From Trichosphaerium sp. ATCC 40318 (taxonomy: Eukaryota > Protista > Tubulinea): 64,000 bases of DNA. The notes beneath the pieces were generated by a model. That model had not been told where the DNA came from, did no database searches, and saw nothing but the letters and a program-made list of their open reading frames with translations. Shown here piece after piece: positions 1-10,734 of the stretch (its first letter is position 1; each line of letters opens with the position of its first letter). The DNA is taken from assembly GCA_038496445.1 (NCBI GenBank), contig JALMLS010000100.1:1-64000 (forward strand), written 5' to 3'. The position numbers and the translations under genes are program-made.

Positions 1-1721
1 AGAGTGTGTGCGTAAGGACTCTTGAATTTTTTAATAGGGAGCCATTTGTCGAATTGTTTGATCCATCTTTTAGAATTTAAAGAGTCAGTAACTATAATAA
101 TAGGTAACTCTTTGGGTGTGATACGAGCTGCCATTTCTATAGCTTCTAGTTCGGCCCCATTTGAGTCGTCATGAAATAAAGTATGAAATTTCAACCATTT
201 GTTTTTGTTGATTGACAACGCTATGCCACTGTATGCAACTCCATCTATAACGCTACCATTCGTTGCAATAATTGACGTACCATTGACTTTTGTAGTAATG
301 CTATTAAAAGTTGGCACACTCATGGGTTTTGCTAGTAAAGACGTTTTACGAATCAAACCTATGTATTTAATATTGTAGTTAGTATTATTAAGGAGCCTTT
401 TACACGTTTTAAAGTCTGAGGCTACTGATTCACTACCTATTGCACCTTCTTTACAGTTGAGATTATCTTTGAGAGCTGTCTTTACAAATGCCTGTGTTTG
501 AGTATTCTTTAATGATAAGAGACCAAAACCTACGTTGCTTGATTGAACTCTCTCATTATGTGCATTTGTTTGTATTTTAACTTTACGCTTTATAATTCTT
601 GTTGCTAAGTTATCCCATTTTTTTAGCCATACTTTAGGGATGTTAATGACGCTTTGTGTAAATCTAACTTTAGCTATTGTTACTTGATTAATAATCCTGA
701 CTTTTTGGGCTGTAGTAAAGTAATTAGTGTTAACTAAATTAATTACCATCTTAAATGAGCTTCCTAATTTGGTAAAATGTTCCTTAAAGTCTAGATTCAT
801 GTTAATTAGTATACCAAGGTATTTATACGTTTCATTTGGTTTTCCTATTGGGATTTGACTACCTTTCCAGTGCAATGGTTTATGGTAGATTTCTTCAGCT
901 AATTCTTCTTTGTTAGTGAGCAACGATGATTTCTCTGTGTTAATATTAATGTCATAAAAGGAGCAAAAAGAAAGAAGTAGGTCATATAGTTTATGTAAAT
1001 CCTCTAAGTTCTCCGCTAAAATCACTAAGTCGTCTGCGTAAGCAATTACTGTAACAATTTTACCATCAGCGCATTTGAAACCTAACTTACTTTCTTCCAT
1101 TTTAAGAACAAGCGAGTTAATAAAGAAATCCCAAATCATTGGTGATATGATATCTCCTTGTCTAGTACCTCTATTAATTCTAATTTCTGCTTCACTCACC
1201 TGAGTTTTAATCGTTGTCTTGATTTCTTTAAAAAGCGATACCAACACTTTTCTTATACTTTTACTGAAACCATGCCATTTGAAGATATTGTCAATAGCCC
1301 AATGTGGAATTGAATCGTACGCCTTTCTTAAATCTATAAATAACGCATATAGATCCTTACCTTTATGATTAGCTTCTCTTACCGCCGAGATAAATTTCTT
1401 ATGTGCCATATGAATTGATTTACCTTTAACAAAACCGTATTGGTTTTTACTTAACAGATTGTTATTTTTATTAGCTGATTCTAATACGTCCGTAAGTATT
1501 CTAGAATAAATTTTATACAATGAGTTGAGTAGTGATATTGGTCTAAAATTTAACGCATCTGTTGGATCACCGTTTTTTACTAGCATTATAGTGGTACTGT
1601 TTTTCCATTTCTCAGGAATAAAAGACATTTTAAAGCAATATTTCATAAGGTTAGTGAGCATGGTGATTGCTTCATTAGGAAGCGTTTTATATATTTTAGC
1701 GTCAATTTTGGAGAACCCTGG

Positions 1722-2752
1722 CAGTAGTAAAATAGAAATGGGAATTTTTAAGTAATCCACCCTGTTTTCCTATGGGAAAAGTAGACGGAAAAACTCTTCC
1801 TTAATTCCCATTGAATTTATATGAAATTCTGTAAGTATTACTCATAGAATTCTTAGAGTATTACTTTTGGAATTGCGTATGTATTTTATATAGAATTCTC
1901 TATGTATTCTTTATAGCATTTCTTAATGTATTTTTTGTAGATTTCAATAAAAAATACTTTATAAATTACACAAAATATTATTCGATACTTTGGTTCAGAT
2001 TTAATGCAAAGTCATTTTATTTATTGATCATTACAAAATACAAACATCCTAAATAATACGTACAAGTTAAATACATCGTGTCTTCATAAACGAAAGAAGT
2101 AATTTGATCACATTTGGTTTTGAGAGCCTGAACAATAATTAATGCATTTGTAAACGCTAAATTAAGAACGCGTAGGGTTTTTTGATAAATTAAGTGGAAA
2201 TAAGCTTTAAAAACAACGTACTTGGAGTTAATGCTTTAAATACATTCTTTAATGGTGTAATAAGGCTGTTGCAATGCTTTAATCATCCTAAAACAGATAA
2301 GTAAGAGATATTTATGTTTAAGTGATTTTCCAAACCACCTAAAACGCGTTTTCCATTACTTTTTGGATTAATGCACTTTAACCTGTACCATTGGTTTTTT
2401 CACCTTTAATAATAGCATGTGGATATTGTTTGCTAGAAAAACCTATGTACCTAAGGTGTCGATGGTTTTTTGCAAATATAAAACTAAACCCTAACCCTAA
2501 CTTAATTTGTACTTTCATAAACCTCAACCTAGCCCTAACCCTAACCCTAACTAAATTAGTACATTATTTGGTGGATTTTGTACAATAATTCTGAAAATTC
2601 CGTATTTAAGGGAATATTATGGTAATTCTATCAAAAATCCTGCAATAAAAAAAAATAAAAATAAGAATTCTTCACAAATTACCTTAAAAATCCCTAAAAC
2701 AAAGGAATTTAGTGGGATTTATATCCAAAATCCCGTTTTCATTTTACCACTG
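1722..2752. mobile_element. Non-autonomous TIR element A (1031 bp), 2-bp TSD GG
   Basis: Left end CAGTAGTAAAATAGAAATGGGAATTTT; right end reverse complement CAGTGGTAAAATGAAAACGGGATTTT. Flanked by GG/GG. GAATT/AATTC-rich subterminal regions. Confidence 0.9.
2480..2553 (+). repeat. Short degenerate (CCCTAA)n telomere-like tracts inside element A
   Basis: aaccctaaccctaac and gccctaaccctaaccctaac. Confidence 0.7.
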
Positions 2753-3224
2753 GGTGCTTTAAATGAAGCTATTCGTTTGGCAGCGTTTTTGAAAGTATGT
2801 TCATCAATTGCGTCTATGTCAAATTCTTTGTTGTTAGTTTTAGGTTCCATGTCAAAAGGTATAAGTTCTTCTGCGTTTTGTACCTCGCTATCTTTAAAAA
2901 CCGTACCCCATTTATGTTTAATTTCTTCATTCATTTCTTCATTTGATGCGACTTCTGTACTATCTTCTCTAGTGAATGATTGAGGGAAATCGTTAGTTTT
3001 GAGGTTTCTGAGTTTTTTGTATCTGCGAAAGAGAGATCTTGATTTACTATTGACTATTTTTTCGATCATGTTGTCAACGTGTTTGTTTCTTATTTCCTTC
3101 CTAATTTGATCTTTGACCACTTTCAGTTTTTTCATTGCTTCATTTGCGAAATCTATATATTCTTTGTTGCTTAGAGGTATAGTATCTTCAAAGCCTTTAA
3201 GTATTTTATTGACTTTGTGAAGTA

Positions 3225-4284
3225 CAGGTCTAAAAATTAAAGTGGTATATACCAGTTTTTTTATGGTATATACCACTTTTTTCAACAAAATAGTATATGA
3301 ACTGGTATATACCATTTTGAAATACCACTTTTTTTAGAAATTAAGTGAATAAAAAAGTGGTATATGGAAGTGGTATATACCACTTTTCATTCACATAATG
3401 AGACCTTCTAAAAATGGTATATAAAGTGGTATATACCACTTTTTTATGGTATGTGGTATATACCACCTTTTTATTGGTATATACCACTTTTATGGTATGC
3501 TTCAAGAAGGTCATTAAGGAGCTTTTTGGTAATGGGTTTTCTTGTTGAACGATCATAGACGTCATACATTGAACGGTGCGTAGGGACCTTAGTATATCAT
3601 AGAATCTAACCAAACCAAGCTCATTCAAACCGCAGGACCTGATTCCAGTACCAATATTAAGGAAACTATATTGCAGGTATTATACAGACGTTCGTGGGTA
3701 CCAGACAAAGTGTTATTTTATTTTCGTTTGATATACATTAACCGACCTCCGTAGGCCTTAGTAATTGATAGATTCGGGTGGGACCACTTTCATTAGGTGC
3801 GCAGCATGTTTTTACAGTAGGTACAGCAAGCTCATGGAGATGGACGAATTTTCCAGACGCCCATAGTAATGTAACTGTAGTGGACATTGTCCAAAACTTG
3901 TAACTCACAAACTGTGTATTAAATAAAGTGTATTTTCTGGAATTGCAGGTGTACCATAAGTAGGCATAAAGTGGTATATAAGAGTGGTATATACCATGAA
4001 AAACTGGTATAAAAAAGTGGTATATAACTGGTATATACCTAAAAAAAGTGGTATAAAAAAGTGGTATATTTTTTTTTTTCTGGTGAAAAAAAGTGGTATA
4101 TTTTCTGTTTTTATACCTGTTTTTTTTGGTATATTTTTGGTATATTTTGTCAATATACCTCTTTTTTTGGTATATTTCAGTCAAAATATACCACTTTTTT
4201 TGGTATATACCATGAAAAACTGGTATAAAAAAGTGGTATAAAAGTGGTATATACCAAAAAAACTGGTATATTTTTTTAGACCTG
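3225..4284. mobile_element. Non-autonomous TIR element B (1060 bp), 2-bp TSD TA
   Basis: TIR CAGGTCTAAAAA / TTTTTAGACCTG. Arrays of AAGTGGTATATACCAC-type motifs at both ends. Confidence 0.92.
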
Positions 4285-4623
4285 TAGCGCATTCTCTAAT
4301 ATCTTTTTTCCTTGTGTAATGTTGATTTTTGAACTAATAAGATACCTACCATGTTTAATTATGTTAAATAACGTTTTAGCATTGTTTAGAGAAAAGTTTT
4401 TGATGATTTTTTCTGTTAGGTTTACTCTAAGCTTGGATTTATGTCCTATTTTAGATTCGAGGTAAGTATAAAGTTTACTGGTAAATTTTTCTAAAAATAA
4501 ATTCCAATAAATATCCGCAATTTCATCGTATCCTTTGTTTAATGCTTTGTGATATATATCTATAACCTCAGGTCCGATGTGCTCCTTTAAGTTATTTCAG
4601 ACAAGTAGTTTTTTGAGGTATTT

Positions 4624-5553
4624 CAGGGCTGAAACTAAATAAGGCTTTTTTTGCAAAAGCCTTTTTTTTTGCCACCAAATACAGTCTTATTTTTCACCAA
4701 ATTGCCTTGTTTTTGCCAAAAAAAATGAGCAAATATGAGGCATTGCCTTGTAATTTTGGGCTTTGGAGCCTCATATTTGGGCCAAATAGCAAGCAACTGG
4801 TTCACTAATTAGCCTTAAAATAGCCTGCATTGTTGGTTCAATAATGCCTCATTTTTAGTGCAACAATAAGGCATTTTTGCCCTCAATTTTTGGGCATAAC
4901 CCAGGCACCATATACTCATAAAACAAGGCTTTATATAGGCATACAATAGTGATTCATTTATTAAAGTACAGTACACAAAACACAAAAAACTTCAATGTCC
5001 TCCATGTGAAAAAAAACCTTTAGCTAGAAAAAAAAATTAACAAATTATTGGTATAATTTTCGCGGACTGGAAAAATGGTTTAAAGTACCTATACTCCTGT
5101 TGTAGGTGCATTTGGGTGCTGCGGTTCGAATGGCGGTGGTTTCGTTAGAATCCATAAAATACTAAGCGAGTGGTGACGTCGTCTATATAAAACGTCAGTA
5201 GTAAATGAAAAAAAATGTTTAGGAAGTGTTGGTGTGGTGGAAACTTACCTTAAACCAATGTATCCTTAATGTACAATGTGTACACAACCAATGCCTAATT
5301 GGTGCCTGTAAATTTAAGGCTGGCAATGCATAAAAAAACTAGGGCAGGCATTGCCTAAAAAAAACAAGGCATTGCAATAATTAAGGCATTGCCCAACAAA
5401 GCCTTATTTCAATGCCTGATTTTTGCCTTTTTTGCCATTGCCTTTGCAAAATCAGGCATTGCCATTTTTGCATGCCTGATTTTTGCCATCAATGCCTGAT
5501 TTTAAAAAAATGCCTTCATATTTAAGGCAAAGCCTTGTTTAGTTTCAGCCCTG
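4624..5553. mobile_element. Non-autonomous TIR element C (930 bp), 2-bp TSD TT
   Basis: TIR CAGGGCTGAAACTAAAtAAGGC / GCCTTgTTTAGTTTCAGCCCTG. AAGGCA/TGCCT motif arrays. Confidence 0.93.
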
Positions 5554-7962
5554 TTGTTACTTACATTTCTGAGGTACAACCTTTCTATTTTGACTTCGTA
5601 TCTTTTTTCAGGTGTAAAATTATTGATTGGTACCTTTAAGTTTAGAGCTATCCGTTTATGGTCCGACTTGAGAGGTTTTTCTTCTAATATTCTAGATGAT
5701 ATCGTCTCAAATTTCATTTCTTTTCCAACCAAAAAAAAATCTATTCTAGATTTATGCTTTGTTGCTGAGTGAGTATGAGTATATTGGGGGACTGTGGATC
5801 TAAAAGGATCGAAAAGGTTTAGTTCGTCACAAAAATTTTCCAGCATTTCAGTAGACCTTGGGATATTACCTTCAGTATCTGCAACACTAGGAGGAGTGTT
5901 CCAATCACCACCCATTATTACATTGTCGTAAGGTATACCAAATCTGTCACACCAGTCAGGTATTTTGTCAGCTAAAAACTCAAAATTTTCTTGTCTTGTA
6001 ATACCGTCTTTAGGACTAATATACGTGTTTATAACTAAATAGCGCTTACCTATTTCTTCTTCTAAACCTATTGCGATTGGGAGAGCACACATTTTTGAAC
6101 AATTAATTTTTTTAATTTTTTTACTTATGGTTTTTTTAACAAAAGTTATTATTCCGCGCATAGAGATTGTTTTCCTAGATATGTCTTTCCACGTACTTGC
6201 TAATTCAGTGTCGTTCATTTTTAGTAAGTTTGACGCAAAAGAAAAATCCTCACCCCTTACCTTTTTGTATTCTGATTCTTTTCTAACTATTGTAGACAAA
6301 AGAACTTTATGGCGACTTTGTAAGTTGTCGAAAATAAAATAATTTGGTAAAATTTTTTGTAGGTCATTTTTAACGTACTTGAAGTCTTTTGTTGTTATAT
6401 GCGCTTCCTGTACAAAAAAAAAATCTGGATTATTTTCTGAGATAATTTCTATAATCTGTTTTATTTTGTTAGTAATGCAACCCGAGTACAAGTTTTGTGA
6501 GAAAAAGAAAAGGGGTTTTTTATTGACGTTATCCATCATCTTGGAAGAAATTGTAGCACGTAATCAGTGTTCGGCATAATGACTCCTAGATCTAAGGCTC
6601 TGTCCTTATCCTCAGTGGTTGCGAAAGTGACAAAAGCAAGATTTCCAAAGGCCTTGGTATCCTTGTTATGATATTTTTCAACTGTTATTACATTGAGATT
6701 CATACGTCTTCGAAGATAAGCGATAAACTTAAAAGCTCTAAAGGTAGCGAGTTGGTTGTTAATGAAACCTTTGAGAACACAGAAGTAATCTGGATCTTTG
6801 ATTCTGGTAATGGAGAATTGGTTTGCGTTACTCCAAATGAGACCATTTGTGATCGCCTTCATAAATCTACAGCTTTCTTGATAATTTGGTACCACGAGCT
6901 TTCCGTAAAGAGGTCTTCTATCTTGTTGTCTTTCTGATATGTACAATGTGTCCATAGTCATCTCTCCGGCTAGTGGATAGCACATAGTAATACCTTCACG
7001 GACGCTTTTCGCTGTTGCACCTTCTCTGATACTTCCAATCCAGAACTTACAATGTGTCGATTTAGCGTCTATATCTATACCTGCTTGTTTATCCATCTCG
7101 GCTAGTGTGGTTTTCATAACGTAAACTGGTTCGTTTGCGATCTTTCTCACAAAATTGTATGTTTCTTCATTGGCAACAGAGAAGAACAAGTTGTCACCGA
7201 TCCATTGAATAGATCCTTCGTTAATCATCGACGTAAACCAAAATCTTTGACTGTGTGGGAGGTTGCTACGTTCTTCTAGAGTGGATGGACCAGGGTGATC
7301 AAGTTTTTTGTTGAGACCTTTGTATGGATCGAAAAGCTCATTTACCCAATTTGAGCGGTCTGCATGTGGTCCAATGCCATTGTGACGAACCCAAATACAA
7401 TTCAATTCATTTTCTGAAAGTTCATCTTCGCCGTTTGAAAAATCGATTTTTTCTACCATTGCTTTAAACTTTGGGTCCTTGCGGAGCTTAATCAAGGAGA
7501 TAGATTGTACTCTGCGTCTTCTAATCTCTTCTTCTGATATTTCGTTTGTAAGTTTTCCGCTGTTAACTTTTGTAAACCAATCACTAAGCCATTCTTTCGC
7601 TTGCAATTCATGGTCTTAAAGCGCATCTTCTGGTGTAGGGGGTATACCTCTAGTGACATCAAATGGGTTTTGAATTGGAGGAGCCGTGTTCGCAGGAGGT
7701 GCTGGAGGGACAACTGGAGGGTTTTGTATCATTTGAGCAGGGGGTGCTTGGGTAGGTGTTCTTGGTAGTTGAGTTCAGGTCTGAAAATTATCATGGTATA
7801 ATACCATATTTTATGGTATAATCACCTTTTATGGTACAAGCTCAGTATAATCCATAATTATACCATATAATTATACCATAAAATATGGTATTATACCATG
7901 TTTTTTGGACAAATGGTATAACAGCCATTATACCATGTTTATACCATATCTCGATTTATAGA

Positions 7963-8253
7963 ATATAATTATACCATAAAACATGGTATTATACCATGGT
8001 ATTATACTGCATTTTAAAGTATATTATACCATGCATTATACCATATAATTATACCATAAAACATGGTACTATACCATGGTATTATACTGCATTTTACAGT
8101 ATATTATACCATGCATTATACCATATAATTATACCATAAAACACAGTATTATACCATGGTATTATACTGTATTTTAAAGTATTGTATACCGTGCATTATA
8201 CCATATAATTATACCATAAAATGTGGTATTATACCGTGGTATTATACCATATA
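7963..8253 (+). repeat. 80-bp tandem repeat (~3.6 copies) in the left arm of element D
   Basis: ATATAATTATACCATAAA recurs at 7963, 8043, 8123 and 8203. Confidence 0.9.
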
Positions 8254-8409
8254 AGTATAAGTTAGTCAAAGCTCACTTGGTCTGCACTTGATTTAATAGC
8301 ATATGGACCTATGCAAACGCCATACCACACAATGCTTTGACAGTAGCCGCTATTGAACATAATTGGCATATAAATGTGTGAAAAACAGTTTTAAGAGAGA
8401 AATCTGGTA

Positions 8410-8860
8410 ACGTGCCCCAATTACGGGCGTTTTAGGGATAAATTGGCCAACTTTCTCCAATTGATGGTATTTGAGGAAGAAACCACTCTGCATACCCCAT
8501 GTTAGAACGCTACAGTGGTAGACACACCAAAAACGCGTTTAGCGCTCGAAAAATGCCCATTCGCAAAAAACCTCCAATTGGAGGTTTTTTTCTCTGGCTC
8601 TCATTTTTTTCTCCCCTCCATAGGCATTTTTACACTCAATCAATGCCATACAGCCTCATTTACCAAATCAGGAGCAAAATTATTTATTTTTTTTTGACAT
8701 TCTTGATATATGCCCCAATATGTGTTAAACCGTGCAATTAGTGTTATAAGGCAAAGTTGTTTCAGAGCCTACCCATTTTTCGAGTTTTTTGGTTTTTTTT
8801 GGATTTTTTTGGATTTTTTTGGTTTTTTTCCTACTAAACGCCCGCATTTGCTGGAACAGA
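8410..8860. mobile_element. Possible small inverted-repeat element nested in D (TA-flanked)
   Basis: Inverted CGGGCGTTT/AAACGCCCG near both ends, internal inverted CTCGAAAAATG/CATTTTTCGAG, TA on both sides. The termini match poorly. Confidence 0.4.
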
Positions 8861-9883
8861 TAGCATTTAGGCTCTTCACCCATGCGTTGACCTTACGAGT
8901 GATATTGTAAACCAATTGGCTAAGCCAGGGCATAAAACTAAGTCTTGACCAGTTTATCGCCCGCACAACACAAGGTATGCTAGAAAGTAGTTGTTTTAAA
9001 GCTGTTTGCCACAGGTTTTACAGGCTTAATAGGTGATATAAAAAAAACAAAACGTGTTAGCCGCCCAACCAGGTACTATTCCGCTAGAACTCGTTTCCGA
9101 TGAGGTTGGTAGCTATTTTCATTTCTTTGTTTTAGTCTTGGTTTGGCTTCACTGTGCAGGTCATTTGTTACTCTCAGTGTTGCCATCACAACAAAACAGC
9201 AATTTTTGTACGACTATTTATTTTGTGTACAAGAAACCAAGCCGGCGCTAACTCTTCTTTTAGGTTTCATGCTATATCCATTCAATGCACTTACAACAAG
9301 TATGATCTGTTCTTTTAAGGTTATTTGATGTGTCACTGCAAAAAAGGACATGGGCAAAACTAAAGGTCACGGATGTAAACAAAAAAAAAATGTATTAATA
9401 AATGTGTTTTTATTTTTAGAACAGTTTTTACACGGTATAATACACCTGGTTTATGTGGTATAATCTACCAAGTTTTAAGGTATAATATACCAGGCTTTAT
9501 GGTATTATACTGTGCTTTATACCATGTTTTATGGTAGAATTATACCATATAATGCATTTTTTCAGGTGAAAAAATATGGTATAAATTCGCACTTTCTACT
9601 GTATATTTATGGTATAATTTGGCTGTTTCATGGTATAAATCCTTTGATTTATGGTATATTATACTGGAATTTGTGGTATAAAATTGGAATCAATGGTATA
9701 ATTATACCACAAATTCATGGTATCTACCATAAAAACAGCTCAAGAATTTTAGACCTGTTTGCGTCGTTTTTGTTTGAGCATGGGTTGGGTTGTTAGGGTT
9801 AACATTCGCTTTTAGTATGTAAGAAGAGAGACAACTACAGGATATATAATGTGAGTTTAGTGTACTTTGTTTTGAAGTTTCAT

Positions 9884-10734
9884 CAGGGCTGAAACTCAAC
9901 AAGGCATTTTTGGACAATGCCTAGGCATTTTCATCAAATAATGCCTTATTTTTTACAAAAATGCCTAGTTTTTGCCTCATTCAAAAAGGCAAATACAGGG
10001 CAATGCCTTATTTTTTGCTCCAAAAATGCCTCATATTTGATGAAAAATGCTTGCATCTGGTACACAAGATTGCAATGGTTTTGCCTGCATATTTTTAGAA
10101 ATTATGCCCTTCAAATTAGGGCATAACTCATGCATCAATGCCTTATTTTGAAGGCAAAAAGGAAGCATTATCATAGTTTACAGTGCCTAATAAACCAGGG
10201 CATTTTCAGGTAATAACACAACTTTTTATTTTATAATACAGTACACATACAATACACAAAACTTCTAAGTCCACATTTGAAAAAACCTTAAAGAAAATAT
10301 GAGATGGTGTAGAAAAAAAAAAAAAAAAACTTACCTTGTAGTGTTAGAATTCCGCGGTCCTGGAAATATAGCGGAGTTCACTCCTACTACTGTTGTAGGT
10401 GAAATAGGGTGCTGCGGTTCGTTTGGCAGTGGTTTCGTCTAATTTCATGAATTACTAAGAGCGCTAGGTGCCTATCTATATAAAACGTCAGTAGGTGATG
10501 TGAAAAAAAAAGTGTAAAAGTTGTTTGACTGTTACTTACCTTAAACCACTTCCTTAATGTGATCAGTCCCTATGATATAGTATAGGCAATGCCTTATATA
10601 TGAATTAAAATACAAGGCATACATTGCTTAAAAAAATAAGGCATAATAAAGGCATAAAATACTTGCAATACAGAAATACAAGGCAATACAAGGATTACCT
10701 GATTTTATGCAATGCCAAAAGATGTAAAAATGCC
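9884..10734. mobile_element. Element E, diverged relative of C, right TIR missing
   Basis: Left end CAGGGCTGAAACTcAAcAAGGC, AAGGCA/TGCC arrays, core collinear with C. No right TIR before the AGX1-like sequence. Confidence 0.85.

Follow-up and report, generated by a model that had tools for sequence, protein, structure and literature searches.

We describe here a group of DNA transposons in the protist Trichosphaerium sp. ATCC 40318, starting from a 64,000-nucleotide stretch of its genome (GenBank assembly GCA_038496445.1, contig JALMLS010000100.1, positions 1 to 64,000 of the forward strand; hereafter the window) that holds five non-coding elements with terminal inverted repeats (TIRs), A to E, within positions 1722-10734. 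Our analysis indicates that A to E are probably cut-and-paste transposons of the miniature inverted-repeat transposable element (MITE) type, moved in trans by DDE transposases of intron-rich elements of about 17.7 kb that are of CMC (CACTA/Mirage/Chapaev/Transib) type and have the same termini. A to E code for nothing themselves, and in the mechanism we propose the transposase would be supplied by the large autonomous elements with matching ends. The enzyme would recognize family-specific half-sites—GGTAT in B and D, AGGCA in C and E, and GAATT/GGAAT in A—that are often arranged as palindromic pairs, bring both ends together, and cut at the conserved CAG...CTG tips (CAG-NNN-T-N-AAA); integration would then proceed through a staggered cut, usually of 2 bp and sometimes of 3-4 bp, that favors an A/T-rich dinucleotide. 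Judged by the motifs and terminal features set out below, the elements appear to be a divergent lineage of a known transposon group and not a new kind of mobile element.

All five elements lie where a preliminary description of the window had placed them, and we fixed their limits from the sequence. Four are complete, and all are given here on the plus strand: element A (1722..2752; 1,031 bp, non-autonomous; TIR CAGTAGTAAAAT / CAGTGGTAAAAT; target site duplication [TSD] GG), element B (3225..4284; 1,060 bp, non-autonomous; TIR CAGGTCTAAAAA, matching at 12/12 positions; TSD TA), element C (4624..5553; 930 bp, non-autonomous; TIR beginning CAGGGCTGAAACTAAA; TSD TT), and element D (7776..9757; 1,982 bp, non-autonomous; TIR CAGGTCTGAAAA / CAGGTCTAAAAT; TSD TT). 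Element E (9884..10734) belongs to a family with a full length of 1,036 bp, of which it retains 851 bp from the 5′ end, and breaks off at about position 10734; the 3′ TIR that had been reported as missing is indeed lacking, and the window copy holds the 5′ end alone. A complete copy of the E family elsewhere in the genome measures 1,036 bp and has both TIRs and the TSD TG. The 12 termini that we compared—both ends of A to D, the 5′ end of E, both ends of a 17.7-kb element with D-type ends, and the 3′ end of an autonomous element with A-type ends—all share C1, A2, G3, T7, and A9-11, that is, CAG-NNN-T-N-AAA. From this common pattern we conclude that the four families to which the five elements belong are relatives.

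Between their tips and their cores, the elements differ in a regular way. Each family has a short motif of its own, present in both orientations and clustered within a few hundred base pairs of the ends, and a core that is devoid of it. These family-specific subterminal motifs, already pointed out in the preliminary description, were confirmed by motif counts, which for B and D were set against shuffled sequences. In B, a 10-bp palindrome, GGTATATACC, occurs 11 times (0.00 in shuffles), with all copies at element positions 20-256 and 762-1022, at most 256 bp from the 5′ end and at most 299 bp from the 3′ end. The arms of D hold 37 copies of ATGGTAT/ATACCAT, compared to 0.38 expected from shuffles, at times in the form GGTATWATACC. 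C and E contain 20-21 copies of AGGCA/TGCCT, at times as AGGCANTGCCT, and in C the half-sites are present in both arms. The array of A, made of AGAATTC and GGAATT-type words at element positions 20-173 and 866-1008 (the AGAATTC type occurring six times), is the weakest. The half-site GGTAT is common to B and D with a different spacing. Scans of the region with Rfam models and for tRNAs returned chance microRNA-like hairpins from the palindromic arrays and no tRNA.

Relatedness extends to parts of the cores. C and E are sister families with 66% identity over ∼650 bp, and in one core block they share ∼180 nucleotides at 77%, above the identity of their arms. A stretch of ∼52 nucleotides in the core of B (window 3587-3639, in reverse orientation) matches the cores of C (5115-5167) and E (10385-10560), with a local alignment score of 28-30, whereas shuffled sequences reached 13-19 at most. 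An internal module is thus common to families whose arms are unrelated, and we found no tRNA or Rfam family that matches it. The core of A contains runs of CCCTAA, a telomere-type repeat, at window positions 2479-2565; since the A copies elsewhere are 96-99% identical over their full length, these runs probably belong to the family sequence and are not a local accident.

We searched the assembly (70.3 Mb in 642 contigs) for further members and found that the families of A to E are abundant and young. C is present in at least 40 full-length copies that are 96-100% identical (mean pairwise identity, 97.9%); for D, 40 candidates were scored, of which about 30 match over the full length, with identities of 89-98% (mean pairwise, 95.4%); E has 40 matches at 93-100%, most of them spanning the whole 851-bp query; and copies of B elsewhere are 94-100% identical. 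In genome-wide matching of the ends, the A tip pattern gave 138 matches compared to 17 for its control, and the B/D tip pattern gave 249 compared to 26. One locus, L002 (G000:C107:1-2559), repeats at 99-100% identity the part of the window in which B and C are inserted into a long interspersed nuclear element (LINE); it is either a haplotig or a very recent segmental duplication, and the copy counts given here accordingly hold some redundancy.

The duplications flanking the elements were examined in two ways. Within the window, A, B, and C interrupt the LINE, a non-LTR (long terminal repeat) retrotransposon at positions 1..7775 on the minus strand, and D lies directly upstream of its ORF1-like frame; all five insertions are located inside this retrotransposon or adjacent to it. 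When A to D are excised together with exactly 2 bp each, an open frame of 833 amino acids emerges that crosses the sites of A, B, and C and follows a frame of 344 amino acids after a single stop; removal of 0, 1, or 3 bp instead of 2 yields no such open frame. The restoration of the LINE frame that had been proposed earlier therefore holds for A, B, and C and not for D, which lies outside the LINE open reading frames (ORFs), so that the TSD of D rests on other copies and not on the frame. Paralogous empty sites for this LINE were not found among the loci examined, the sole other copy (C107) already carrying B and C. Genome-wide, we tallied 61 distinct insertions from the loci retrieved. An exact 2-bp TSD is present in 42 of them, and one further case (TATA) can be read as 2 or 4 bp; when the left and right flanks were permuted (2,000 trials), two-bp matches averaged 7.5 and never exceeded 18. 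Six insertions have a 3-bp TSD that is not readable as 2 bp (permutation mean, 1.3), and two to three have a 4-bp TSD (permutation mean, 0.47), the range reflecting the ambiguous TATA. Thus, the tally points to a stagger that is mainly 2 bp and not rigid. The 2-bp duplications comprise TA (10), AT (8), TT (7), AA (5), TG, AG, and CA (3 each), and GG, CC, and AC (1 each). They clearly favor A/T, and their surroundings are weakly palindromic (A/C at −1 and T/G at +1). The preliminary description was right that TSD sequence varies, as ten dinucleotides are represented, and too strict in setting their length at 2 bp, as nine insertions have 3-4 bp.

This spectrum decides against two familiar superfamilies. 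Elements of Tc1/mariner/pogo type, or similar to the DDT elements of Dictyostelium, could have been expected if the demand for TA were relaxed: tips of CAGT/CAGG together with a 2-bp duplication are the Tc1/pogo pattern, and TA is the commonest single TSD. Yet only one duplication in four is TA (32/42 two-bp TSDs are not TA, and TSDs of 3-4 bp occur), which argues that the elements are not Tc1/mariner; an exclusive use of TA, named in the preliminary description as an outcome that would overturn its proposal, is not what the tallied insertions show. The exons of the partner element described below bear no DDE_1, DDE_3, or mariner domain, and Tc1 is also at odds with its size, its many introns, and its motifs, so we judge a Tc1/mariner origin to be extremely improbable. 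Nor do we give any appreciable weight to atypical hAT elements with a shortened TSD, even though CAG(G/T) tips and subterminal repeats recall Ac/Ds, CAGGGCTGAAA resembles hAT-type tips, and Ac/Ds typically has subterminal motifs arrayed in both orientations. The 8-bp TSD of hAT elements was seen in 0/61 insertions and no TSD exceeds 4 bp, which argues that the elements are not hAT; moreover, the same-ended partner of D has no hAT, BED, or dimerization-domain match on its ORF pieces and bears instead a C(2)C/H(3)H signature.

Long copies with the same ends, the discovery of which the preliminary description had proposed as a check, exist in the form of a 17.7-kb unit for D that contains a putative transposase gene. 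A listing of tip patterns placed a D-type tip pair, consisting of the two TIRs of D and flanked by TA, 17,725 bp apart at G000:C26:143749-161473. This unit matches D at 97% identity over its last 279 bp and at 80% over its first 188 bp, and the roughly 35 D copies listed match it in its final 279 bp only. Six other large, mostly partial copies are homologous to it: in C351, C445, C352, and C380 the homology starts exactly at base 1, and in C188 (90% identity over the whole 3′ half) and C470 it stops exactly at the last base. As these limits coincide with the first and last base of the element, the 17.7-kb unit behaves as one mobile unit. A comparable association was found for A: in C445, the element that carries a further transposase lineage (L021) has, ∼200 bp past its last coding piece, an end that is 81% identical to the last 158 bp of A and has the identical tip, ...CATTTTACCACTG, and in C5 an A-type tip stands 238 bp past the transposase gene. 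By these ends, the third transposase lineage (C445/C5) is tied to family A.

Two loci were considered as further long elements and rejected. L061 (G000:C1:1224231-1229652) is a 5.4-kb unit with D-type ends and an internal region unlike the D core; two A copies are nested in it and a matching TSD is lacking, and we regard it as a D derivative that has been rearranged and not as an autonomous copy. An A-type tip at C188:10950 does not close the transposase-bearing element of that contig, which ends at 10517 with a D-type end.

The gene within the long elements is split into many pieces. In the 17.7-kb element, coding-like ORF pieces lie mostly on one strand with short, stop-containing spacers between them. 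Counterparts of these pieces are present in a second lineage (C176, L064; amino-acid identity, 42-77%) and in the third (C445 and C5; L021, L020, and L044; 29-52%); the spacers differ from lineage to lineage. Over six exons of the catalytic region (479 codons), comparison of the first and second lineages gave pN of 0.18, pS of 0.64, and dN/dS of ∼0.15, from which we conclude that the multi-exon gene is, as predicted from its sequence, functional, spliced, and under purifying selection. A profile built from one exon has 26 genome matches at ∼24 loci, nearly all of them open frames, and the exons conserved among four paralogs are 45-80% identical in the best exon. These four share (i) a first D motif, ..DDFTYDKKDS.GP.Y...N.PN.. 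(DDF..NLP); (ii) a second D motif in a micro-exon, YLRL.KILGD.PG....LC; (iii) a C(2)C motif, ..S..PCR[IV]C..; (iv) a CPFHN motif, ..SP.CPFHNI.LG..K.VL; (v) an H(3)H motif, ..NFHV..H.E...FG..KH.R; and (vi) an E motif, STY.CESKH..IK.W. In an exon-by-exon reading, C(2)C lies ∼20 residues past the second D and E lies ∼21 residues past H(3)H, both counts being approximate as they cross an intron. In RAG1, the second D and C(2)C are ∼19-21 residues apart, and H(3-4)H and E ∼20 residues.

We infer from this that the product of the multi-exon gene is the transposase that moves A to E, that it would bind the subterminal motifs, and that the staggered cleavage proposed above would be its chemistry. It could be objected that the 17.7-kb unit is mobile and the gene analyzed here only its cargo, the real transposase being encoded by another gene of the element or acting from elsewhere; the element does have other conserved ORF pieces of unassigned role (e.g., at ∼15.1-16.8 kb), and the transposase role is read from the sequence. 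However, the gene has the complete DDE-plus-zinc signature, is under purifying selection, and is the component common to lineages with different ends, and we therefore hold a cargo gene to be very improbable. With the gene taken as the source of the transposase, its divergence also bears on the suggestion, made in the preliminary description, that DNA-binding specificity has diversified among the families. Paralogous exons at ∼24 loci, two lineages with D and A ends, respectively, and N-terminal exons that diverge faster than the catalytic ones make this plausible, on the premise that the protein binds the motifs as we propose.

The motifs and the termini together point to a known group. The signature D, D, C(2)C, H(3)H, and E, with its order and approximate spacing, characterizes CMC, Transib, and RAG1 transposases (PMC12730594), and the lineages of the CMCT group, which we take in the definition of the same work to comprise EnSpm/CACTA, Mirage, Chapaev, Transib, Plavaka, and ESTA as well as Lanisha, mostly have 5′-CA..TG-3′ ends and TSDs of 2-5 bp (PMC12730594). 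At the level of motifs, the D-type 17.7-kb element and three paralogs display this catalytic-plus-zinc signature; all 12 termini begin with CAG and so conform to 5′-CA..TG-3′; and the TSDs of 2 bp (42-43), 3 bp (6), and 4 bp (2-3) among the 61 insertions fall within the described range. TSDs of 2 or 3 bp are also described for PlavakaB (PMC12730594), and CACTA-type MITEs with 2-bp TSDs have already been published (PMC6004678). EnSpm/CACTA in the strict sense is defined by CAC(TA) tips and a 3-bp TSD, and our elements instead have CAG tips, with a 3-bp TSD in 6/61 insertions. A language-model search with one exon placed Plavaka, RAG1_RNase_H, and Transposase_21 among the five nearest named clusters, all at 0.86, which is sub-threshold and serves as a lead only; the same search with a second exon gave no usable match. 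Membership in the CMC/CMCT group is thus well supported by signature and terminal features, at a level short of profile statistics or phylogeny. Of the earlier proposal that the elements are "unclassified or CMC/DDT-related," the CMC relationship stands, given the D/D/C(2)C/H(3)H/E signature in the partner of D, the ends, and the TSDs, and the unclassified superfamily is not supported.

Several observations weigh against this assignment or the mobilization built on it. Pfam searches with 48 ORF pieces, taken from the 17.7-kb element and from its paralogs, gave only chance-level or sub-threshold matches; three exon profiles found nothing relevant among PDB sequences; and a four-sequence exon profile, run with HMMER against 1.84 billion representative proteins, gave five matches, of which three are real, short, and unannotated and two are repeat noise. 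In sum, none of these single-exon queries is similar to a named transposase family at a statistically significant level. When the genome was scanned in six frames with PF02992 (Transposase_21) and PF18759 (Plavaka), both the models and the controls came back blank, and these scans are uninformative. The tips are CAG and not the usual CAC; the motifs were read exon by exon, with spacings across introns that are approximate; 10/61 insertions show a duplication of 0-1 bp, at least one of these being a duplicate contig of another locus; and a long partner for B or C/E was not found among the loci examined. Apart from these points, exact-match scans for the C/E and B/D ends in metagenome and viral collections returned nothing, and a scan of the viral collection for the transposase exon detected no relative. 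As there is no significant database match, the superfamily call is based on terminal features and on short motifs read one exon at a time; to detect remote profiles, longer queries than single exons would be needed, and the blank searches are in turn weak evidence.

These points could be taken to mean that we are dealing with a truly new cut-and-paste superfamily, whose likeness to CMC/Transib consists of a few convergent short motifs: no match to a known transposase family came from Pfam, PDB, or the large database, the ends are CAG rather than CAC, and TSD length ranges from 2 to 4 bp. Convergence would, however, have to account for five motifs in canonical order and spacing, kept across paralogs that are only 45-49% identical in their best-conserved exon, as well as for CA..TG ends and 2-5 bp TSDs that agree with the CMCT description and for nearest language-model clusters that include Plavaka, RAG1 RNase H, and Transposase_21. 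Considering also how little the blank exon-sized searches can say, we find a new superfamily improbable. Within the CMC-type assignment that we prefer, one bolder reading is possible but tentative, namely, that the elements form a deep, unsampled CMC/Transib branch outside EnSpm, Mirage, Chapaev, Transib, and Plavaka, with a loose 2-4 bp stagger and many orthogonal pairs of transposase and ends maintained in a single genome, each with its own half-sites (GGTAT, AGGCA, and GAATT) arising from fast evolution of the N-terminal, DNA-binding part. If true, it would offer a natural system in which the diversification of transposase specificity could be studied, together with the means by which cross-mobilization is avoided.

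Comparison with described systems shows how the elements resemble and depart from their presumed relatives. Mirage and the CACTA/EnSpm elements with 2-bp TSDs (ENS1_Cis and CMC-NA MITEs; PMC6004678) also have short TIRs starting with CA, a 2-bp TSD, MITE derivatives, cut-and-paste transposition, and a transposase with D, D, C(2)C, H(3-4)H, and E; they differ in having CAC...GTG instead of CAG...CTG tips, whereas here a 3-4 bp TSD is occasional and autonomous copies reach ∼17.7 kb, with many small transposase exons and no similarity to Pfam Transposase_21 at the exon level. The 2-bp TSD shared with Mirage is by itself insufficient for membership, which is defined by phylogenetic grouping of the transposase. 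Plavaka of fungi, specifically PlavakaB, of the CMCT clade of Kojima 2025 (PMC12730594), is similarly large, carries extra genes, has CA..TG ends, makes TSDs of either 2 or 3 bp in a single lineage, and shows the C(2)C and H(3-4)H motifs; its cluster is among the nearest language-model neighbors. In contrast, its tips are CATCA..TGATG, its host is a fungus and not a protist, and the six-frame scan with PF18759 was blank, along with its controls.

The architecture of the ends has its closest parallels in maize En/Spm (CACTA) and in Ac/Ds, which likewise combine short TIRs with a short motif that is repeated, in both orientations, over a few hundred base pairs next to the ends. In En/Spm and Ac/Ds these arrays bind the transposase, and non-autonomous derivatives retain the ends only. 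En/Spm differs in its CACTA tips and 3-bp TSD, and Ac/Ds belongs to hAT and makes a TSD of 8 bp. Transib and RAG1 share the order of catalytic and zinc motifs and similar spacings, but Transib makes 5-bp TSDs and has CACAATG-type ends, and our PDB searches retrieved no RAG1 or Transib structure. The elements would act in the manner of CACTA/Mirage-type transposons with MITE derivatives. Relative to a textbook CACTA element, five differences stand out: tips of CAG in place of CAC, a duplication of 2 bp and occasionally of 3-4 bp, autonomous copies of very large size, a transposase gene divided among many small exons, and a divergence at which domain scans fail.

The assignment ties a design of subterminal repeat arrays to a known transposon group and provides a clean protist case of young, abundant MITE families alongside giant autonomous partners. 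That transposase divergence and intron splitting together evade standard domain scans is a warning for automated annotation of transposable elements. If confirmed experimentally, three features may also inform work on CMC-, Transib-, and RAG-type enzymes: TSDs that vary from 2 to 4 bp, palindromic half-sites that differ from family to family, and a transposase with many paralogous lineages.

Some features of the long elements and of the window stand apart from this argument. In the second transposase lineage, an extra ORF piece (L064:1340-1591, G000:C176) resembles a C2H2 zinc finger (zf-C2H2_2, E value of 0.001, below the cut-off) and was not seen in the D-type element. The 17.7-kb element (L063, G000:C26) contains, at element positions ∼2800-3860, a low-complexity coding-like stretch with VVGAS-type repeats that is open in several frames; ∼50 other places in the genome match it (identity, 64-76%), many in tandem, and it may be a repeat that was captured or that derives from the host. 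At G000:C445:263-7256 (L021 and L020), two copies of the A-type transposase gene stand tail to tail in opposite orientation, and in each a C element is inserted at an identical site, which lies 106 bp past one exon and 98 bp ahead of the next; either the composite was duplicated after the MITE had landed or the join is an assembly artifact. The window itself is from an A/T-rich eukaryote (GC content, 32-44%), and the LINE that hosts A, B, and C has, on the minus strand, a reverse transcriptase domain at 3-1769 (RVT_1, E value of 2.9e-37), a domain match to an APE-type endonuclease at 5505-6563, and its ORF1-like frame at 6539-7615.

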